This document shows, in pieces, positions 1,687 through 64,000 of a stretch of DNA of 64,000 nucleotides. This stretch comes from Octopus sinensis. Taxonomy: Eukaryota. Both the position numbers and the translations under genes were made by a program. Every line of letters begins with the position of its first letter. Position 1 is the first letter of the stretch. The stretch spans positions 3,906,001-3,970,000 of the forward strand of contig NC_043014.1 of NCBI RefSeq assembly GCF_006345805.1, read 5' to 3'. Under the pieces are notes generated by a model that was not told the DNA's origin, did no database searches, and was given only the letters and a program-made list of their open reading frames with translations.

Positions 1687-2412
1687 TCAATATTTACTGC
1701 ACACAACGCAGGTTAATTCGTGACCATTGACATACGGTGGACATGGCAATGAACCACAAGCAGCCTGAACGAAATATAAAACAGCTCCATTTTCGTCTCT
1801 GTAACCTGCTGGATCAGCTTCTGGTGCATAGTCCACACACACATATTCTAGTCTGCCCTTTTCTTCGTGATTACTGGACATCAAATATCCTGAATACTCA
1901 GCTGTCCAACCAGCGTAACACTCATTCCTGCCTGGTAACATCATAACAACAGCAGGTTGTCGTGTCAAACAGACAGCGCACGGAACGTTGTGATCATGAA
2001 GTGATTTAGCGTTAGCAAAAGAAAAAATAGTATTGGTGTCGTATGACTGTAGTTGATATTCACTGCCATAAATCCAACCCGCATTTTCCCCTTTTGCAGT
2101 ATAATTGGCCCAAATGGGGTCGTTGGGTAGGCATAAGAGATTATTTCCGCCACCTGTCTTGTCAAAATTTTGTCCACCAGCCACACCTTGAATTAGTAAG
2201 AATAAATCAAGTAAAAAAGATATTAGGCAAAATTATATATGAAATAACGGAAACATTCATTACAGTTTGACCCTTAAAAGGAGTCATGTTTAGTCACGTG
2301 TGAACGAATTGTGGTGTATGTGTTAGTGTTTATGTAAGTGTAAGCTGTGTGTTGCTGGATGGGAGTGCGCATGTGTTCGCAGCTGTGCGTTTCTCTTCTC
2401 TTTATATATATA

Positions 2413-2445
<33 letters not shown>

Positions 2446-4208
2446 ACGGTTAAGTAATCGTGGTTGTGATGTGTATTGCATGGGGTACATGTTCGTGTGT
2501 GGATGTCAATAAACGGAGAAAGGAAAGGGATATTGTAACGCATGTGGTCGTGATTTCCCGAAATGGAAAAGATGTCGTTCCCGTTTGAACGGGAAAATTG
2601 TTGGTGATGGGAATTGCATGTGGTTTGAGTAGAACAATACGAGAGACGGTGACATGCAGAGAACTGGTGGGTAAGAGGGGATGAAATACTGTTTAGCCGA
2701 CCATACGGGTGTGTCTGGCTATATCCATCGGTTTGTCTGGGACGAGTCAGGCCTACCACGAGACGGTAATACCACATACTATAATATTATGATCACAGAG
2801 ATTTTATTTCATGCAAAGCATGAACTGAGGTGGAGTGAATTTTGAAGCTCATTGATGGCGTAGTGCTTAAGAAGAATGGACAGCGGAGTGGGCGACCGAT
2901 AAACGATATGTGTAGGGTTTATAGAGAGCAGATTCACAAAGGATGCGAGATTGGTTGGAGAAGATGTGGGAAGCAATAGCTTTGAATTGGATGTGCCGGC
3001 GATACCTTACAAAGATATACTGGACAATTAATGAGGGGAGGTGGTGCATGAAAAGAGAGAGGTTTGAGGAATAGGGCGATATCGGTAAGGCGGAGAAGAT
3101 TAGAAGTGCAATATGTACTCACTTGGGTTCCCTCAGTGGTACTTGGTCCCTCCATATTTGGCATAATACATACGGCCCTTAGTTAGCTTTGTCCATTAGT
3201 TACAGTGTATGGGTTGTCCAGTCCACATTGTACATTCTGCGTTCATTTGATTAACCCTATACATTCGTTCATCAATTGATTGTAGTCTATAACTACAATC
3301 AATAGACACTCTAGTTAATGATAGTCAAGTGGCCACTTTTCAGTTCTGGTCACTCACGTATAATACCACCATCCGTATCCAGTACACTTGATCACCAGTT
3401 AGCAGCCTCGGTATTTGATATCTACACTCCATACAAGTCAGCCAGGAGTCCTTGATCGCTGTACTGGATTCCAGTCTAGTCCCTATCTATAATTATACGT
3501 AGAGATATCTATATTCTGAGGTTAGACAACATCATTTTCACCTGGTCCGAAGTAGACAACATTTAAATTCTGATTTGACCAAATACCTACAAAGAAGTAA
3601 GCAGTCTTGTGCAGTCTCAACAGGGTCTATAGGTATCGTTTGAAACGTGATATATCACATGATTTGCTTGAGTGTGCGTGCGTGCGTGTCCGTGTGAGAA
3701 ACGGAAAGAGAGGGGGCGACAGAAAGAGAAAATGAGAGGAATAAAAAGAGAAGAAGAGAAAGATAAAGAGAGAAAGAGTGAACAGAAGTATAGTTTATAC
3801 TAACCGTCATATACAAGGTTTGAATAAGGAGGACAACTTGTTCTGCCCCACCGGGTATACAATGATCCGAGACCGGGTTCTGTGAAATTTAAAATGAAAT
3901 AATTTAGTTTAAAATAAAGAATTCTTGAATCCTATACAAAGGAAGTTGTTGGCTTGGAAGGAATTGATAGAGAGGAGATACATTTAGAATTTAAGAGAGA
4001 AAGAATGAGTGAATGAATGAAAATCAGAATGAAAGAAGTAAATGATTCGCTAAGAATAAATTTTAAACGAAGAAAATTAGTCATTTGTCTATTGAGCCTG
4101 TTGTTGACGTTGATGTCAACGAATTGAGAGATTAATCTCAGAATATCAGAATGTGTATTTGTCTCCCTTAAAAACGGATGTTTGTTTTGTAGTTGAACTT
4201 GGATGTGA

Positions 4209-4244
<36 letters not shown>

Positions 4245-4664
4245 TTACTCTTTTTTTCTTTTACTCTTTTATTTGTTTCAGTCATTTGACTGCGGCCATG
4301 CTGGAGCACCGCCTTTAGTCGAGCAAATCGACCCCGGGACTTATTCTTTGTAAGCCCAGTACTTATTCTATCGGTCTCTTTTGCCGAACCGCTAAGTGAC
4401 GGGGACGTAAACACACCAGCATCAGTTGTCAAGCAATGCTAGGGGGACAAACACAGACACACAAACACACACACATACATATACATATATATACATATTA
4501 ATACGACATGCTTCTTTCAGTTTCCGTCTACCAAATCCACTCACAAGGCATTGGTCGGCCCGGGGCTATAGTAGAAGACACTTGCCCAAGGTGCCACGCA
4601 GTGGGACTGAACCCGGAACCATGTGGTTGGTTAGCAAGCTACTTACCACACAGCCACTCCTGCG

Positions 4665-4712
<48 letters not shown>

Positions 4713-7700
4713 ATATAAATATACATATATATATACATTTATATATATTTGTGACAATAAAAATGATTAAGTCCTTCTTTTATAGATATGTTGGCAATAT
4801 TATCAATTCTTGGCACCTGATTTGCCATTTACGAATATCAGCTTGGTGTTTGGCGCGAAGAGAGTCCGTTTCCTTCCAGAAGACTAGTATGGCCACCCCA
4901 ATTATGTGTGTGGGGCGATTCCACCCAATCAATACTTCTTGCGGTTATCAGCGTCAAAGTGTGCACGGAAGTCTCCTTGTAAGACAAATGACTTTACCCC
5001 AAATATATCCAAAGCTGCAGTGACTTTGTTAAGGAAGCATTTGTATTTGCCCTCGCTATTGGGTGCATTTACTTCCAACAGCTACACCACTCCTTCATTC
5101 ATAGCGCTTTGTATCGTCCGGTTTTGACAGTCTAATTCTCAATTATGAACGGTTGATCCCATCTGGACCTGCTTCGGTGTTTGGAAGACGCATATTTTGT
5201 ATTCCGTCCCCATTCATCTCAGATTGAGTTGGGTGGAGACTGCAATATATTTCCCGAATCGTCTCCTCCAATCAAGATCCGGGGGCAACTGCTTTTATCC
5301 CACTCGATGGATGACGCGGTATGGCTATTTCTTCGAGCCCTTAGCGTTCTGTAAGTATATGCAGCAAACAGCGATGTCAAATACAAATCCTTCCTAAGCA
5401 AATTCACCTCAGCTTTAGATATATTTGGGGTAAAGTCATTTGTCCTGCAAGGAGACTTCAGTGCACACCTTGGCACTGATAACCGTGAGAAGGATTGATT
5501 GGAAGGAATGTCGTCAGTGAACTTAATGGAGAGGTCATAGCAGCCTTCATTGCAGGATACACACTCTCCTCTCTATGGTATAGATATTCTTTTAAGACAG
5601 GGATATTTATAAGGGTGCCTGATTTAGAAATACTTGGTGACAGAGGTTTCTGATAGATTTCGGTCATCTTTCACTCTTTGCTGAACGTTCGGGTAAAAGG
5701 AAGGGTGGAGTTGTCAACTCGTCACTACCTAAATGTCTAAAAACCTGAAAATTCCTACAGTCTGCAGAACACTGGAAATTGGTAAGTCTAGTGCGACCTA
5801 CAGAATACAGTTGGAAGCCGCAGTGGATGCTGGAATCAGAAACGAAAATGTGGAGACATTTGCATCCAAATTGAGAGTGACCCGCCTGAATGAAGTTGGA
5901 CCTCGAAATGGATTCGTGATTGTATTATGTTTTTCGGCAGGTTCTTCTTCGTTTGAAGGCTTATTTGAGCTAAACTCACTTAAAAGTGATAAAGCTGCTG
6001 GTGAAAAGCACGTTCGGCTTGATATTTTCGAAACTTTAAATACAGATGGTATTCTCTGAGTGACCCATGTATGCTAGGTGGATGAGACCTCTGGAAAAAA
6101 CACCAAGGCAATGGTAATATGGGGTGACAATCATAATCTTTTCAAATTGAGACCAAAGAGTGTATTCTAATTATAGAAAATCTACACTAAATGTCAGGAA
6201 TAGATATGTAGGGAAATTGTCGCGCCCAAGATTACCGTCTTGGACGAAGTACACCCGACCAGAGATTCGTTCAAGACTGATCTTCCAGCCAACATTGAAT
6301 TATTTCCAAGGTTTATACGCTGTAAACCACGGAAAGGCTCAAGATCACGTGCCCTGGGGCATGTTGCGGATGGTTTACCAGGAGGGTGAGTTTAATGGGT
6401 ATATACTGGTTGCCATAAAATACTTATATGGATGTTCAAATGATTGTATTTATGGGCTTGGTACAATTATCGACGTAGCACTGCATGTATACTCATATAC
6501 ACACAATAAAAGGCATATAAGTATATAAGAATAACATTTTATTTAGGAAATTATTGTAAAGTAGAACATAGTTTAAAATAAATTCAGGCAAGTGTCTTAG
6601 TATATATTATTGTGGACATATGGATAGTAATGTGGAACTAATTCAAAGTTGGTGAAATTATAAATCATTAGTTAATGAGTCACGGGTAAAAGACTTTAGC
6701 CATAAAATTAGTTCTTACTTGGTGTGTCATCAGGTTTATCGTCGAGAGATTTCTTGGAGATGAAACGGTTCTTTGAAAAAATAGAAATAGCATCATATAA
6801 ATAGAACTTCAGGATATTTATTATCGTTTCGAACTTAAAACAATGCAATAGATAACAACATATTCGGACAGGTATCATTGCCAACACAACCATGTCAACC
6901 CCTTAGGAATCTTCTAGAAGGCGCTTCAATTCAGTCAAACGACTTCTTGAACAATATCAGACAATACAACTCTGCATTTCAAATGACATCGTTTGGTGAA
7001 TCTAAGAAGATAGATAAACATGAATTTACGCCCACGTCAAAGTTCAAGGGCAATATATGCCTACACGCGCACACACACAAATGAACAACCACAGTTCCTC
7101 CAAATTTACTCTATGAGTGATGTAGGACAACAAACCCGACGTGAAGTGTCAAAATTTCCGATGATGGGCCGTGTTAGACACAGCGCACACTGCTGCAAAG
7201 GAGAGTATATCCACTGACAGCATTTCGGTGCGTTCAAAAATCACACAAACCCCACCTCCAATTTAGCATGACAGGTTAGGGCCTGAAACACTCCAAACGG
7301 ACGCATAGCATGTTGCTTAGTCGAGTTAGCCCAGCATTTACTCAACAAATGTTTTGTTGTCAATGTTGCACTTTCCCATATCACCTGTTTCAAAATGACT
7401 GGAATATATTATATACCATCTTTGCCATTTGAATCCCCAGCAATACCGGGTATGTCTTCAAGTACACACACACACACGCACACATACACACACACACACA
7501 CATATACACACACATATTTCTACACATATATATATATATATACACTCACACATGTATATATATAGTTAAATTTAATCTAAACAAGAAAGCACTAAAAACA
7601 CAACAATGCGAGGACGTGGAACAAATATAGTAATATTTGACGCTTAGGAAAGAAGGGAAGGAGGAGGGTTTAACGTTTCGAGCAGAGCTCTTCGTCGGAA

Positions 7701-10930: not shown

Positions 10931-11502
10931 TATATATAGATAAATAGAGAGAGAGAGGGATAGACAGAGAGATACAGTGATAGATACACACACGCATGTA
11001 TTTGTTTGTATATATATATCCATATATGTTCAGGCACTAATATATTCATATATATGTATATTTATATATACATATATATGTATGTTATATATACAATTAT
11101 ACGTATATGTATATATATGTATATTTAGGTGTGTGCGCCTGTGTGTTCGTGTGTGATTACGTGTGTGATCTTATGTGTGTGTGTGTGCTCCATAGGAACA
11201 TATGTACATGGTTCATGCATACATCCTTACATCCATCCATCCATCGGTACATACATACATCCACATATTAATACATACATACGTAAATGCATACATACAT
11301 ACATGCATATATAAATACATAAAGACATACATATATTAACACAAAATCCATGACTTACCGTTTTCGATTTCTCTTCCATTTTTCCTATTCTTGAATCTTG
11401 ATGAAGAATCACGATCGTCAGAACGAGAAGAACCCCAAAAGCTATGAGAGAAGAAATGGAATAACGCTGCGAAATATTCCTGGACAGTTGTGCGAAATCC
11501 AT
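1687..11502 (-). CDS. Gene 1: type II membrane 'short-chain collagen C4'-like (collagen IV NC1-like domain) protein, 256 aa; exons complement(join(1687..2186,3805..3879,6719..6770,11359..11502))
   Basis: Exons of 144+52+75+500 = 771 nt with canonical AG/GT ends (ACG|gtaagt, tttcaaag|AAC, CAA|gtaaga, tttcacag|AA, GACG|gttagt, ttcaag|GT) and phases 0,1,1 give one open frame: [100 protein letters not shown]. These are hallmark motifs of the family. The same exons recur in each repeat unit. Confidence 0.9.
2450..3170 (-). mobile_element. Decayed Penelope-like reverse transcriptase fragment in intron 3 (homologous copies about 19850-20330, 34340-35070, 50650-51110)
   Basis: Broken frames give [16 protein letters not shown] / LCRLTEIVLSLKPCSF, resembling the LLRLAELVLTLN.FSF segment of Penelope-like RTs. 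Many stops; boundaries approximate. Confidence 0.4.
4243..4667 (-). mobile_element. Full-length tRNA-derived SINE (CORE-like central domain, internal microsatellite, AAGAGTAA-type tail)
   Basis: Head GGCGCAGGAGTGGCTGTGTGGTAAG..GGTTCAGTCCC with pol III A/B-box-like motifs, CCTTGGGCAAG core and 3' GCATGGCCGCAGTCAAATGACTGAAAC end. Orthologous copy at 36190-36611. Confidence 0.8.
4820..6450. mobile_element. Decayed RTE-clade LINE fragments (inverted endonuclease piece plus + strand APE/RT remnants), intron 2 of gene 1
   Basis: Remnants [22 protein letters not shown] (APE), [30 protein letters not shown]. Many stops and frameshifts; boundaries approximate. Confidence 0.7.
6880..7130 (+). mobile_element. 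Helitron Rep-helicase N-terminal fragment (copies about 23800-24045, 39430-39675, 54015-54260)
   Basis: [28 protein letters not shown] followed, after a frameshift, by KVQGQVYPLIGSLVPANEQP.FLQIY in gene 2. This is the characteristic Helitron N-terminal motif series. Confidence 0.8.
7830..8960. repeat. Cryptic (GT)-rich low-complexity tract in intron 1 (homologs about 24840-25555, 40435-41430, 55010-55935)
   Basis: Directly visible interrupted GT/GTAT/GC repeats. Confidence 0.85.
8968..9230 (-). mobile_element. Second tRNA-derived SINE family in intron 1 (copies about 25627-25917, 41441-41731, 55941-56178)
   Basis: Head GGAGGCGCAGTGGCCC..GGTTAGGGCAGCGG..GGTTTCGATTCCC (A/B boxes); same position in four paralogs. 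Confidence 0.75.
9417..9471 (-). ncRNA. Type I hammerhead ribozyme motif inside a ~140-bp Penelope-like insertion (9334-9474)
   Basis: Minus strand: ggagcttc-CUGAUGA-u uuc uuuu gaa u-GAA-ACAG uucuaguc CUGU-A-gaagcucc. 8-bp stem I, 4-bp stem III, GUA cleavage triplet, weak stem II. Confidence 0.7.
10440..10550. repeat. (GATA)n microsatellite adjoining (AT)n (also 28275-28370, 57085-57195)
   Basis: Directly visible. Confidence 0.9.
10715..10885 (+). mobile_element. Older SINE 3' half in intron 1 (copies about 28530-28700, 43480-43640, 57375-57535)
   Basis: Diverged match to the 3' part of the 4243-4667 SINE (gtgtttacgtcccc..gcatggccgcagtcaaatgactgaaac). Confidence 0.7.
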
Positions 11503-11914: not shown

Positions 11915-12422
11915 ACAAATAGACAGACACACACTTAAACACACACTGACGCGCAAACACACACTGAAACACACACACAGAGACACTGGCACACAAACAC
12001 TCGTGCACACTGACATACATACACACACACACACTGACACACACACACACACACTGAACACACACACACACACAGACATACACACACACACAACGACACA
12101 CATACACACGAACACACTTTCATACATACACATACACACACACTGACACACACACACACACTAACATACACACATACTGACACACACACACAGTGACGCA
12201 CACACACTGACACACACACACACACACACTGACACACAAACACACACACACACGCTGACATACACACACAATGACACACACACCTACACACAGACACACA
12301 CATGCAAACAAACCCACACCAACACACGCACACTGATACACACACACACTGACACACACACACACACACACACACTGACATACACACACACACTGACACA
12401 CACACATAAACACACACACACT

Positions 12423-12457
<35 letters not shown>

Positions 12458-12698
12458 ACACACACCACACACACACACACACTGACACACACACACACAC
12501 ACACACACTGACACACACATACACACACACACTGACACACACACACACACACACACTGACACACACACACTGACACACACACACTGACACACACACTCAA
12601 ACATACTGACACACACATACAGTGACGCACACACACTGACACACACACACTGACACTCACACACACATTGACATACACACACTCACTGACACACACAC

Positions 12699-12746
<48 letters not shown>

Positions 12747-13020
12747 ATACACACACACACTGACACACACACACACACACACACACACACTGACACTCAC
12801 ACACACACTGACATACACACATTGACACACACCACATACATGCAAACACAAACACCCACACACACACACTGACACACACACACACACACACATACAAACA
12901 CACAATCACACCCACTGACATACACACACACACACACTAAGACACACACACACTGACACACACACGCACACATACAAACACACGCATACAAACACACACA
13001 CACACACACACACACACAAG
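11915..13020. repeat. Long (CA)n tract with CTGA interruptions upstream of gene 1 (second copy 13740-14705; homologs 29745-30097, 44940-45500, 58585-59175)
   Basis: Directly visible. Confidence 0.9.
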
Positions 13021-13755
13021 GAAAGATGCGGGCACGTACGAGCGACCGCAGTTACTGTTGGGGCACAAGGTTGAAGTCAACTCCTCTAGCGAAGAATTTA
13101 TGAAAGAGAAATACCGAAGGGAGGTAACTCACGACAGACTCCAGCCTGGCGCTCTAATGGCGTCACTTACTCGTTGTTGTTGACTATGTTTAAGTTAAAG
13201 CTATGGCTTTAAGTTTGTCCAGATATTCCCCTCTTCGGTATTTTCTTTTGATATAGGCTGAAGTGAGACCTGATAGGGAGCAGCACTGTTTTTTGCCATT
13301 AGCACATTTTAACGAACCCAAAAATTGCTTATGCCTGATACTGAGCGCTAATACTGTTCACTGGAAACGCCATGTTGAATGTTTCCATATATTCATTTGT
13401 CAATTTGCATTTCGTGCTTTCATATTACTTAATTATTATTCTTTTTCTCTAGCTTTTTCACAATCAAGCATTCTTATGGCACGCAATTAATCGGACAAAA
13501 AACGTGCTGCCACCCACAGATCCCTCTTTCCACGGATACCTTCGTTTATCTGGCAGCCATTCTACAAACTCCCACATACAAGGAGCAATCATGCTGGGTA
13601 GAGTGTGAAAGACTCAACATGTTGCACTGATTCCACCTAATGTATATATTTATTTACTAATGTTGTAATTTAATTTTATTTGTTATTCTTGGGAAACTGT
13701 TTTAATATTCAGTGTGGGAAGTACTTCGTTCAACAGACGAATACACATACACAAA

Positions 13756-13800
<45 letters not shown>

Positions 13801-14655
13801 ACACACACACTGGCACACACAAACACAAGCACACACTGACACAAACTCCAACACACACACCCACACACACAGACAGACACACACACACACAAACACGCAC
13901 ACACACACTCACACACACACACATACACCTGCACACACTTACATATAGACACACACACTGACACACACACACACACTGACATACACACAAACACACTGTC
14001 ACACACACACTGTCACACACACACTGACACACACACATACACACACATTGACACTCACACACAAATACACACGCACACACACTGTCACACACACACACTG
14101 ACGCACACACACACACTGACATACATACACACACACACACACACTGACATACACAGACACACACTGACATACACACTGACACACACACACACACACACAT
14201 ACACGTACACTGACACACATACAAACGCACACACTGAAATACATACACACACACACAGACCCTGACACACATACACACACACACACACTGACATACACAC
14301 AAACTGACACACACATACAATCACACACACTGACACTCAAACACACACAAACACTGACATAAACACACACACACACAAACATTGACACACACACTCACAC
14401 ACACTGACACGTACACATTGAGTCACACACACTGACACACACACACACACTGACACACACACACACTGACACACACACACACACTGACACACACACACAC
14501 ATACACACACACACTGACACTGACACACACATACTGACACTCACACTGACACACACACACACACACACACACACTGACACACACGCTGACACACACACAC
14601 ACACTGACACACACAGAGTGACACACACACACCGACACACACACACTCACTGACA

Positions 14656-14694
<39 letters not shown>

Positions 14695-14789
14695 ACACAC
14701 ACACAGAAGGAAAGATGCGAACCCGTACGACCGACCGCAGTTACTATTGGGGCACAAGGTTGAAGTCAACTCCTCTAGCGAAGTATTTA

Positions 14790-16331: not shown

Positions 16332-29329
<12,998 letters not shown>

Positions 29330-30679
29330 TCTGGTGACAGTTGTCGGTCGTACCTGATACTTCGTGTGGCTTCAACAAAAGATCGAGATGCGAGGTTTAA
29401 GCTGAAGACCTGTAACTGAATTCCACGTATTTATTGAGCGCACAACAACCCAGCTCTGGCAAAGATCTTATCGTAAATTTATGAACCAATGCGATTGGTG
29501 GAACTGTAAAAGCGGGTGTGAACTTGTCTGACAGGTTTAATTATTGGAAAGAGATGGTTTGATATTGTCACACAATAATTTGCAAAATATTTTGATGAAT
29601 GAGAGACACGTGTAAAGTGAAATGATTCCTGTTTCTGGATATATTATGATATATTTATTTACTAATGTTGTTATTTAATTTTATTTGTTATTCTTGGGAA
29701 ACTGTTTTAATATTCAGTGTGGGAAGTATTTCGTTCAACCAACAAATACACAGACACAAAGACACACACACACATACACACTGACACACAGACACACACA
29801 CACGCACACAAACTAATACACACACACACACTGACATACACACACACCAACACACACACCCACAGACACCAACACACACTGACACACACACTGACACACA
29901 CACACAGATACAATTTCTTACACACACACGCACACACACTAGCACACACACACACACGCACACACACTAGCACACACACACACACACTGACACACACGCA
30001 CACACACTCCCACACGCACACATACACTCACACACATACACACACACACAAACACACACACACACACACACACACCACACACACACACACTCACACACTG
30101 TTTTAATATTCAGTGTGGGAAGTATTTCGTTCAACCCACACAGTAATCGCAAGACTTAATCTAATGAAGTCCGCTGTTCGGATTGGATTCTTCACAACAA
30201 GCGTTAATCTGATTAGAAAAGTTTTATGTAAATATCAAAATCAAAACCTACCAATTCCCACCCACACATACATTCATACATACATGCATACATACATATA
30301 TACATACACACATACATACATACATATATACATACATACATACCCCCATACATAAATATATACTTACATACACACACATATATATACATACATACACACA
30401 TACATACACACATACATACATACAAACATACATATATACACACACATACATACATACATACATACATACATACTTTCATACATACATACATGTATGCATA
30501 TATTTATACATACAAGTATGTATGTATACATGTATACATGCATGTATGTTTGAATGTAAGCATGTATATATCGATAGACACATATACACATACATACATA
30601 TATACATACATACATACATCCATACATACATACATGCATACATACTTACATCCATCCATCCATCCATACATACATACTT

Positions 30680-31232
30680 GGTGGCTGCCCCCTCGTTATC
30701 GAGTATGGGCATTGCACGAAGCTTAATCAATATTATTATCGTGCAATGGCTGTGCATGAAGATTTTTTTTTGTAGTGAGAAAAGGCTGTGCACTGTGTCA
30801 ATCCCAGTCACTAAGCAACAGCAGCCATATTCCGAAAAGAAGAACAAGTCAACATCATCGGTAACCACTGAGCCGCAGGTTTTATATCGGAGTTATCCCA
30901 GTTACCTGAGTTAACTTCTCCAAAAGGATGCCCTAGCAAAGTCTAGGAGTCCTTCACTCCCAATGGTTTAACCGCGCGATCGGTTATTCAGTCCGATTAT
31001 TTCTATGTCCCCGCGCATGATACAGTCTTAAGACATATATTCGATGGCCGTTGACTCTCAAGAGTTCCTCCGCTCTTTGACGGGTTTTGTTTTTCATCCC
31101 GCAGGGTGTCTAATAAACTCCCTCCTCACCAAGCAAGCTTGGTGGGGTTGCCGGTTTAGTCGCCGACGACCCGACAATGCAACAGGTTGTACTGGGTTAC
31201 ATGTTTACCAGTAGCACTCGAAAGTGACCTGA
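30680..31232 (-). mobile_element. Interspersed repeat block upstream of gene 2, possibly the 5' part of an RTE-type LINE (copies 46105-46655, 59420-59975, 60378-60935)
   Basis: Complex non-coding block repeated four times between TACA microsatellites; family assignment is from recollection only. Confidence 0.35.
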
Positions 31233-31542
31233 CATACATACATACATACTTACATGCATACATACATACATGCATACATTCATGCATGCATACATATATA
31301 CATACATACATGCATGCATACATACATGCATCCATGCATGCATACATACATACATACATACATACATGCATACATACATACATACTTACATACATACATA
31401 CATACATACATGCATACATACATACATACATTCATACATACATGCATACATACATACATACATACATACACACATACATACATACATGCATACATTCATA
31501 CATACATACATGCATACATGCATACCTACATACATACATATA

Positions 31543-31576
<34 letters not shown>

Positions 31577-31605
31577 CATACATGCATACATGCATACATA
31601 CATAC
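31232..31605. repeat. (TACA)n microsatellite (homologs 46655-47510, 59975-60375, 60935-61140)
   Basis: Directly visible; length varies strongly between units. Confidence 0.9.
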
Positions 31606-31960
31606 AAAAATATCCTGTTCATGTTGTTAAAATTCCAATGAAAGATACTTGGAACTAAGTTAGAAGCCGTCTCTCTTTCTGTTGGCCAGAAATATTCTAT
31701 TAAAACCGAATAATGACATTCATACATATTTTTAGCTAGTCATTATCACTAGCTTTGAATACTTTTCTTCTTGTTTTATAAATCATAGCAAAACATACAG
31801 GTACAGTGTCTCCCATTCGAAACTCAATTCGCAAGTGCACCTTCAGTATGGACTGCATATGTACGGCGGAATTCCATAGTTATGATAAAATATTCTTAGA
31901 TGAAGCATATTAGACCCCTCAGATATAGTTTGACCAAATTTAATATATATATATATATAT

Positions 31961-33513: not shown

Positions 33514-44525
<11,012 letters not shown>

Positions 44526-49218: not shown

Positions 49219-58166
<8,948 letters not shown>

Positions 58167-63075: not shown

Positions 63076-63572
63076 TCAATATTTACTGCAAACAACGCAG
63101 GTTAATTCTTGGCCATTGACATACGGTGGACATGGCCACGAACCACAAGCAGCCTGAACGAAATATAATAGAGCTCCATTTTCGTTTCTGTAACCAGCTG
63201 GATCAGCTTCTGGTGCATAATCCACACACACATATTCATGTCTGCCCTTATGAGCATAATGTTCTGCCATCAAATATCCTGAATATTCAGCTGTCCAACC
63301 AGCGTAACACTGTGTCCTGGCTGGTAACATCATAACAACAGCAGGTTGTAGTGTCAAACAGACAGCGCACGGAACGTTGTGATCATGAAGTGATTTAGCG
63401 TTAGCAAAAGAAAAGAGTTTATTCGAGTTGTGGGATATTTCATATTCACTGCCATAAATGTAACCACCTTTTTCAACTTCTGTAGTATAATTGGCCCAAA
63501 TGGGATCGTTAGGTAAACACAACAGATTGCTTCCGCCACCAGTATGGGTTTGATGTTGTCCACCAACCACAC
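63076..63572 (-). CDS. Gene 5 (partial): terminal exon 4 of a fifth paralog; upstream exons lie beyond the window
   Basis: ctag|GT acceptor, 164-aa open frame VVGGQ..CSKY*, 9 conserved Cys, homologous 3'UTR. Confidence 0.85.
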
Positions 63573-63764
63573 CTAGAATTGGTAAGAATATATCAAGTAA
63601 AAAAGATATTAAGCAAAATAACGGAAATATTCATTACAATTTGACCCTTAAAAGGAGTCATGTTTAGTCGCGTGTGAACGAATTGTGGTGTATGTGTTAG
63701 TGCTTATGTGAGTGTAAGCAGTGTTGCTGTATGCATGAAATCCTAGATGTGCATTTGCATTCTC

Positions 63765-63816
<52 letters not shown>

Positions 63817-64000
63817 AGTAAGCAAGAAGGATATCCAGAGATAATGCAGTACGATTGTTTCATGCAACTCCATTTAATTGAACAATTCAATCATTGCATT
63901 AATTTAAAATATAGAGGAATCTTCAGCTGCACAAATACATAGAATTTAATTAAATTAAAACAGATTGAGACATTAGTATAATTATACCTAAAATCTCCAA

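Follow-up and report, generated by a model that had tools for sequence, protein, structure and literature searches.

The spongin short-chain collagens (SSCC) are the described proteins closest to the genes considered here and were reportedly set out as a family by Aouacheria et al. in 2006. Bivalve C1q-domain proteins and snail FREPs are expanded invertebrate families of recognition heads. The peptide-binding exons of the major histocompatibility complex (MHC) and the pseudo-V cassettes of chicken immunoglobulin (Ig) genes are mosaic families diversified by gene conversion, and in the conotoxins and the snake phospholipases A2 (PLA2) the exon is more divergent than the intron. Neither the domain family nor the general phenomenon of hypervariable multigene families with mosaic members is new. 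Spongins have been described as collagen IV variants with seven shared and three specific cysteines and without the HSQ motif, and published modelling gives them no domain-swapping hairpin; the NC1 domain of collagen IV is a specificity-determining oligomerization head (PMC5395295). Here we describe a spongin-like gene, gene 1, and its tandem paralogues in 64,000 nucleotides of Octopus sinensis DNA (GCF_006345805.1, contig NC_043014.1, positions 3,906,001–3,970,000; 'the window' throughout), in which the C-terminal domain carries short hypervariable patches. We favour the reading that these patches are loop cassettes shuffled among paralogues by conversion within a constrained framework, and that the loops carry binding specificity, at a probability of roughly 0.6.

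The segment 1687–2186 (minus strand) is exactly exon 4 of gene 1. It runs from an acceptor (ttcaag followed by GTGTGG) to a TGA at 1687–1689, is open throughout and encodes 166 cysteine-rich residues that end in CVVCSKY before the stop. Four copies of exon 4 were located in the window with tblastn (1687–2186, 16332–16828, 33514–34013 and 63076–63572), belonging to genes 1, 2, 3 and 5, and 19 further intact copies were taken from the O. sinensis (CM016876.1) and O. vulgaris (OX597833.1) loci, giving a set of 23 from three genomes. The variable patches in gene 1 are as follows.

2155..2169, minus strand: patch 1, NFDKT, exon-4 codons 7–11, residues 97–101, in the loop after strand 85–95
2074..2097, minus strand: patch 2, AKGENAGW, codons 31–38, residues 121–128, after the fixed NYT sequon
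2026..2055, minus strand: patch 3, codons 45–54, residues 135–144, indel-prone and with the lowest model confidence in the domain
1849..1878, minus strand: patch 4, codons 104–113, residues 194–203, in the loop after strand 185–194
1789..1797, minus strand: patch 5, DEN, codons 131–133, residues 221–223, biallelic in the family and weakly variable
Residues 176–179: a small patch between predicted strands

The differences on which a first-pass annotation of this DNA had based its claim of hypervariability are real. Genes 1 and 3 differ at the 31 exon-4 residues it counted (31 of 166 aligned residues here), genes 1 and 2 at four of about 90 residues in exons 1–3 (G23V, S80T, N86K and D90E), and the patch strings it quoted (NFDK/FFDH/FYDH/HQTH and the others) are all correct. 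The nine exon-4 cysteines and the NYT sequon, reported as fixed, are invariant in the four window genes and in all 23 copies, and the CGSW of gene 5 recurs in one O. sinensis paralogue. The changes are also clustered beyond chance, with 22 adjacent pairs of variable columns among the window genes against 11.9 ± 2.5 expected (p = 1.5 × 10⁻⁴). Columns that vary in the window are the variable ones elsewhere, their mean entropy in the 19 further paralogues being 1.11 against 0.16 for other columns (Mann–Whitney p = 1 × 10⁻¹⁵). Patch 1 has an entropy of 1.5–2.2 bits and a mean nucleotide distance of 0.42, compared with 0.06 in the framework. Restriction of the patches to the terminal exon holds for the strong patches in the window and was slightly overstated, since exon 3, itself mildly variable, supplies the opening strands of this domain and contains three of the four exon 1–3 differences, and residues 80–86 vary family-wide. 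An assembly artefact was rejected because the pattern recurs in the independent O. sinensis and O. vulgaris assemblies.

All of the patches lie between predicted β-strands. The AlphaFold2 model that places them was made on P0010, an O. vulgaris paralogue of the same length as the gene 1 product (residue number equal to exon-4 column plus 90); the mean predicted local distance difference test (pLDDT) score is 88, and above 90 in the domain. Patches 1 and 4 are equivalent loops of two pseudo-repeats. None of the 23 full-length copies has a disrupted reading frame or loop length. Histidine makes up 13.5% of residues in the hypervariable columns and 1.6% elsewhere, an enrichment of about eightfold, and His-rich loop motifs such as HYTHT and EHYNHKGRH occur, which hints at metal-dependent or pH-dependent binding. 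The patches had been called rich in aromatic and His residues; this is correct for His and fails for Phe, Trp and Tyr (13.7% against 12.6%).

Recombination among the copies is pervasive. Permutation gives the pairwise homoplasy index (PHI) a mean of 0.718 (standard deviation 0.015), and none of 2000 permutations was as low as the observed 0.622 (p < 0.0005). At least 29 recombination events are required by the Hudson–Kaplan minimum (Rm), and more than half of the pairs of informative sites (57%) are mutually incompatible. Distances in any one of the four patches say almost nothing about those in another (Mantel r from −0.05 to 0.22), the nearest paralogue differs patch by patch within each window gene, and copies with unlike sequence elsewhere can carry the same patch haplotype, as four of them do with TEYYKHKGRH. 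The first-pass annotation had raised conversion from one old divergent paralogue as an alternative to selection. Conversion is indeed extensive; a single donor is rejected because the patches of one gene have different nearest paralogues, and the donors are a family-wide pool of patch alleles. For some gene 1 patch alleles, the set of 23 contains nothing closely related.

A conversion tract can be read directly in gene 2. Compared with its O. sinensis orthologue (L004 9011–9505), the introns are 97–99% identical and exon 4 differs at 14 nucleotides, nine of which fall within nucleotides 6–33 (28 nt), the other five being scattered and synonymous. The replaced tract of 15–28 nt covers patch 1, changes FFD to HYT with linked synonymous changes, and matches in sequence a haplotype class that occurs in other paralogues. 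Larger exchanges are also recorded. Intron 3 groups genes 1 and 3 together and genes 2 and 5 together, whereas the 3′ flank groups genes 1, 3 and 5. Gene 5 (63076–64000, compared with 16332–17260 and 1–2186) has an intron 3 like that of gene 2 (Kimura two-parameter (K2P) distance 0.087) and a 3′ flank like those of genes 1 and 3 (0.03); it is therefore a hybrid unit, with a breakpoint in or beside exon 4.

The patches do not share in the homogenization of their surroundings. Exon 4 of genes 1 and 3 differs by a K2P distance of 0.119 (11.9%), against 0.04–0.07 for both flanks, and among genes 1, 3 and 5 patch divergence is 5–10 times that of the adjacent introns. Synonymous divergence (dS) by the Nei–Gojobori method (NG86) is 0.5–0.6 in the patches and 0.14–0.17 in the framework. 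Raised dS together with a divergence far above that of adjacent non-coding DNA indicates that the patches escape a homogenization whose reach comes within tens of bases of them. The cause could be selection for diversity or a neutral barrier to conversion at very divergent tracts.

Diversifying selection on surface loops had been proposed from the pattern of differences. The patches are indeed inter-strand loops; pervasive ω (dN/dS) above 1 is not found in them, and at patch level dN/dS is at or below 1. NG86 gives 0.87 among the window genes for the patches as first delimited (framework 0.23) and 0.80 among the 19 other paralogues (framework 0.25). Local minimum-spanning-tree (MST) genealogies of patch haplotypes, with 57 synonymous and 182 nonsynonymous changes, give 0.78 (framework 0.28), and MST edges of only 1–3 nt give 0.5–0.8. 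In three close orthologue pairs pN/pS is 0.59 in the patches and 0.10 in the framework (Fisher p = 0.02), with pS at 0.085 and 0.056, respectively. Patch 2 taken singly has a dN/dS of 1.4–2.0 (NG86). Whole-exon NG86 values (0.36–0.67) mix two regimes and are uninformative, and counting the different codons in each column without a tree was not used to detect ω > 1, since such counting registers too few of the recurrent synonymous changes.

Codon-model likelihoods (F3x4 frequencies, neighbour-joining topologies, branch lengths optimized under M0) were compared for M2a against M1a, and it is in this mixture model alone that a class with ω above 1 emerges. On a single tree the likelihood-ratio test (LRT) statistic is 98, with ω2 = 4.5 and p2 = 0.065, a value that is inflated by recombination. 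Five partition-specific trees improve the log-likelihood by 690 units over one tree, and with them the LRT falls to 20.1 (p = 4 × 10⁻⁵) and the classes become ω0 = 0.06 (63%), ω1 = 1 (26%) and ω2 = 2.1 (10.7%). Without the indel-prone partition C (patch 3) the LRT is 9.7 (p = 0.008). Naive empirical Bayes (NEB) probabilities under the five-partition model exceed 0.8 at alignment columns 38, 47, 48, 90, 109 and 137. They are 0.89 at codon 38 in patch 2, and 0.97 and 0.99 at codons 47 and 48 in patch 3, where the alignment near the indel is uncertain. The framework is under strong purifying selection, with ω of about 0.06 for about 63% of codons, and the loops as blocks evolve near the neutral ratio, with ω of about 0.8–1. 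Relaxed constraint is likely to account for most of the loop pattern, with positive selection at a few sites only; plausibly about 10% of positions have an ω of about 2, for example exon-4 codons 38, 47, 48, 89, 108 and 136.

The proteins belong to a recognizable family. Searches with phmmer gave 170 homologues, many named 'short-chain collagen C4-like', the closest being Octopus proteins so named with at most 83–92% identity. None of these homologues matches the window genes exactly, so the window copies are either unannotated or of another individual or species. Remoter homologues occur in molluscs, annelids, amphioxus and sponges. The protein P0074 of the sponge Corticium candelabrum (E = 7 × 10⁻⁴¹, 48% identity, 99% coverage by phmmer) has a Pfam Collagen region followed by the C-terminal domain that it shares with the octopus genes. 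We found no Gly-X-Y repeats in exons 1–3, and no Pfam Collagen match in gene 1, P0031 or P0034. In the gene models a basic N-terminus is followed by a hydrophobic helix and a short acidic or basic stalk; the P0010 model has a helix at residues 16–54 and an all-β domain from residue 72. The genes are predicted to encode type II membrane-anchored proteins in which a stalk some 25 residues long carries an ectodomain with ten cysteines, and the NC1-like head probably oligomerizes. In many other lophotrochozoan members a signal or membrane helix and a coiled-coil-like stalk replace the collagen part. A peptide of an O. vulgaris family member has been detected in the ink proteome (PMC10142993).

One of the ten cysteines is in exon 3 and the nine invariant ones are in exon 4; the HSQ motif is absent, 'YTRWGRT' standing in place of the collagen IV 'TRHSQT'. 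The 15 best Foldseek matches of the P0010 model in the PDB are all collagen IV NC1 domains (E from 5 × 10⁻⁵ to 6 × 10⁻⁴, probability 0.90–0.99), and hhalign against a collagen IV NC1 alignment, itself first checked against PDB chains, gives a local match of 48 columns (E = 2 × 10⁻⁴, probability 46%) that anchors PCAVC to RCAVC. Position-by-position mapping of cysteines to collagen IV covers the CAVC pair only. The same comparison sets patch 4 opposite the collagen IV 'HTSAGAEG'. Ungapped extension of the anchor would place patch 2 opposite collagen IV residues 69–76, including Arg76, which presumably plays a role at the trimer–trimer interface. Patch 3 would likewise fall opposite residues 83–92, adjoining Met93, and the collagen IV segment beside Met93 is at that interface (PMC5395295). 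PDB sequence matches to RING or metal-binding chains were dismissed as chance.

In the mechanism that we propose, the framework of β-strands and disulfides would be held, with exons 1 and 2, by purifying selection, and concerted evolution would keep all of these alike between copies. The loops between strands, four or five in number, would hold a large pool of very divergent 'cassette' alleles that are old or diverge fast. Recombination and gene conversion over short tracts would reshuffle these alleles between paralogues, each loop nearly independently of the others, with unequal crossing-over yielding hybrid, deleted and extra copies. Each paralogue would owe its particular binding specificity to these loops, as parts of a probably oligomeric NC1-like head that acts in recognition outside the cell; the putative partner could be another member of the family or a ligand that is foreign or comes from the environment. 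A more ambitious version, which we consider unlikely, would make the array a germline-encoded combinatorial recognition repertoire, with membrane-anchored NC1-like heads numbering in the dozens, each with four loops that micro-conversion reshuffles independently. Such a repertoire could serve as receptors for non-self or other ligands, a cephalopod counterpart of the FREP or C1q type, or as a code for cell-surface identity or partner selection. An identity code would reuse the face by which NC1 trimers of collagen IV recognize one another head to head, a possibility raised by the apparent alignment of patches 2 and 3 with the segments around Arg76 and Met93.

Several results weigh against the shuffling of binding loops as we have framed it. 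The Foldseek TM-score to NC1 is low (about 0.2), with a root-mean-square deviation of 16–20 Å over about 250 columns. Neither exon 4 alone nor the full spliced protein matches any Pfam family, C4 (PF01413) included, at E values up to 10, and neither phmmer nor a profile hmmsearch of PDB sequences recovers an NC1 chain. The loops are variable family-wide in the consensus of molluscs, annelids and sponges, which fits simple low constraint. Patch-averaged ω does not exceed 1. Control for recombination cut the LRT from 98 to 20, and control for the uncertain alignment cut it further to 9.7; the class with ω above 1 may reflect leftover recombination inside partitions or conversion events that replace several nucleotides at once.

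Possible but doubtful, in our view, is an account in which the loops lack structural constraint and drift with ω near 1, and the framework is uniform through purifying selection and concerted evolution. Conversion would be impeded in patches that had already diverged, hence their age, and adaptive diversification would be absent, an elaboration to which we assign the same tentative standing. The patch ω of 0.78–0.87, never significantly above 1 in the counting tests, agrees with it, as do the 0.59 of the orthologue pairs, the 'x' runs that stand at the patches in a consensus built from 110 family members of different phyla, and the collapse of the naive positive-selection signal once recombination is modelled. 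Yet M2a is still favoured with partition trees, even without patch 3; patch dS is about three times that of the framework and patch divergence 5–10 times that of adjacent introns; the loop composition is non-random in its histidine content; and lengths and frames are preserved in every copy.

The full model of the first-pass annotation, in which pervasive diversifying selection acts by point substitution on loops that form one ligand-binding face, as in an immune receptor, we think improbable. It correctly identifies the patches as loops, and the enrichment of His and charged residues, the presence of an ω2 > 1 class, the greater divergence of exon 4 than of its flanks in genes 1 and 3, and the probable alignment of patches 2 and 3 with the Arg76 and Met93 trimer–trimer segments of collagen IV are all in its favour. 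It is opposed by a patch-level dN/dS at or below 1 and by the raised patch dS, which selection driven by point mutation does not predict, and much of the change proceeds by tract replacement rather than single substitutions. Raised dS as well as dN, and the many codons that differ at two or three positions, would also follow if the patches were mutational hotspots, owing for example to error-prone repair or templated mutagenesis. We attach very little credence to this explanation: identical patch haplotypes in paralogues that differ elsewhere imply the transfer of existing alleles, and in the orthologue pairs the patch pS of 0.085 is little above the 0.056 of the framework, given the single converted tract.

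Self-comparison of the window reveals units of about 15 kb repeated in tandem, an array that forms part of a cluster spanning several megabases of a single Octopus chromosome. With full-length Octopus homologues as guides, the genes were modelled on the minus strand with a four-exon structure, and their splice phases reproduce the junction residues K66 and G91 of the homologues.

1687..2186, minus strand: gene 1 exon 4, residues 91–256, most of the NC1-like domain (from translation, splice sites and homologues)
3805..3879, minus strand: gene 1 exon 3, start of the NC1-like domain and the tenth cysteine
6719..6770, minus strand: gene 1 exon 2, stalk, with no difference across genes 1–4
11359..11502, minus strand: gene 1 exon 1, start codon, short basic N-terminus and hydrophobic signal-anchor helix
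29186–29329, 23647–23698, 20874–20948 and 16332–16828, minus strand: gene 2 exons 1, 2, 3 and 4
44382–44525, 39268–39319, 35741–35815 and 33514–34013, minus strand: gene 3 exons 1, 2, 3 and 4
58023–58166, 53854–53905 and 51673–51747, minus strand: gene 4 exons 1, 2 and 3, exon 4 deleted
49240..49340, minus strand: gene 4 deletion junction, with TAG microhomology
63076..63572, minus strand: gene 5 exon 4, exons 1–3 outside the window, hybrid unit
11923–13018, 13743–14705, 29748–30098, about 44.9–45.5 kb and about 58.6–59.2 kb: (AC)n tracts
30266–30677, 31232–31606, about 45.7–47.5 kb and about 59.98–60.38 kb: (ACAT)n arrays, farther upstream

Gene 4 lacks 667 bp, from the first base of exon 4 to 167 bp beyond the stop, and its positional counterpart in O. 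sinensis (L002 47972–48469, protein P0003) is intact. At the other end of the genes, exons 1 and 2 (196 nt) of genes 1, 2 and 4 differ by 0–1 nt, the introns differing by 5–13%, and the protein they encode is 100% identical to that of the O. vulgaris paralogues P0010, P0004 and P0006; synonymous sites in these exons are frozen too. Exon 1 of gene 3 has a compensated frameshift, a +1 insertion and a −1 deletion with 31 nt between them, which alters 12 residues at the cytoplasmic/membrane boundary and leaves the remaining gene in frame. About 400 bp upstream of each exon 1 is a degenerate (AC)n tract of about 350 bp to about 1 kb, and these repeats, like the (ACAT)n arrays, may offer the array sites at which unequal crossing-over or conversion can act.

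Two segments, at 21527–21613 in gene 2 and 52305–52391 in gene 4 (both in intron 2, minus strand), resemble an alternative N-terminal exon that is annotated in several O. sinensis models and begins SLLDLLCCPETVNIVLP; both contain stop codons and are probably repeat-derived pseudo-exons. Intron 2 of gene 1 has at 4260–4680 a SINE-like element (short interspersed nuclear element) between (TA)n and (CA)n microsatellites, which is typical octopus repeat content. Around gene 2, the region from about 19779 to 24197 is 99% identical over 4.4 kb to L004 1501–5918 (O. sinensis CM016876.1, about 4.12 Mb), whereas the adjoining units are only 93–96% identical to CM016876.1 and differ in gene order and copy number, the window carrying an extra copy between the P0003 counterpart and gene 2. 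Such differences point to structural haplotypes or to variation in copy number.

Full-text literature searches returned no description of a collagen-less, membrane-anchored, loop-hypervariable expansion in octopus. The spongin/NC1 domain, known as a module of matrix assembly, occurs here in a collagen-less, tandem-expanded and probably membrane-tethered form with shuffled loop cassettes. Cephalopod immune and cell-recognition molecules are poorly known, and if the loops confer binding specificity these genes would constitute a previously undescribed cephalopod family of recognition receptors, an ancient matrix 'recognition module' having been reused as a variable receptor head. The locus also illustrates clearly that site models overstate the case for positive selection when recombination is ignored: the LRT statistic went from 98 to 20 to 10, as described above.

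The nearest comparison is with the SSCC of Ephydatia. The octopus C-terminal domain is homologous, with 40–50% identity to sponge and bivalve members, and its ten cysteines and lack of HSQ agree with the published spongin pattern of 7 + 3 (Fidler et al., 2017; PMC5395295). The octopus proteins differ in having no Gly-X-Y domain, its place being taken by the hydrophobic anchor helix and short stalk, and in the large tandem expansion of their genes with hypervariable loops. With collagen IV NC1, which consists of two C4 repeats and serves as the recognition module by which chains are selected and networks assembled, the octopus domain has in common an internal twofold pseudo-repeat and the strand motifs CAVC and C(V/Q)VC, in addition to its Foldseek matches at a TM-score of about 0.2. 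It differs in having ten rather than 12 cysteines and in lacking a sequence match to Pfam C4 or to the PDB. Of the two residues of the sulfilimine cross-link, Met93 would be replaced by Phe (LFSF), as judged by ungapped extension of the hhalign anchor, and the C-terminal half appears too short for an equivalent of Lys211.

More distant systems offer parallels of organization. The C1q-domain proteins and FREPs are unrelated in fold to the octopus domain, and a clear ω > 1 is not seen in octopus. By analogy, they would share with it the tandem expansion of a compact, probably trimeric head with variability concentrated in loops; there too a coiled coil or another stalk often replaces the collagen one, and other lophotrochozoan relatives of the octopus family show such stalks. 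The MHC, Ig, conotoxin and PLA2 families have a clear ω > 1 at contact residues, against an octopus patch average of about 1, and the array gives no sign of somatic diversification. What the octopus genes have in common with these families is short-tract exchange, raised dS and coding patches that diverge more than the introns beside them.

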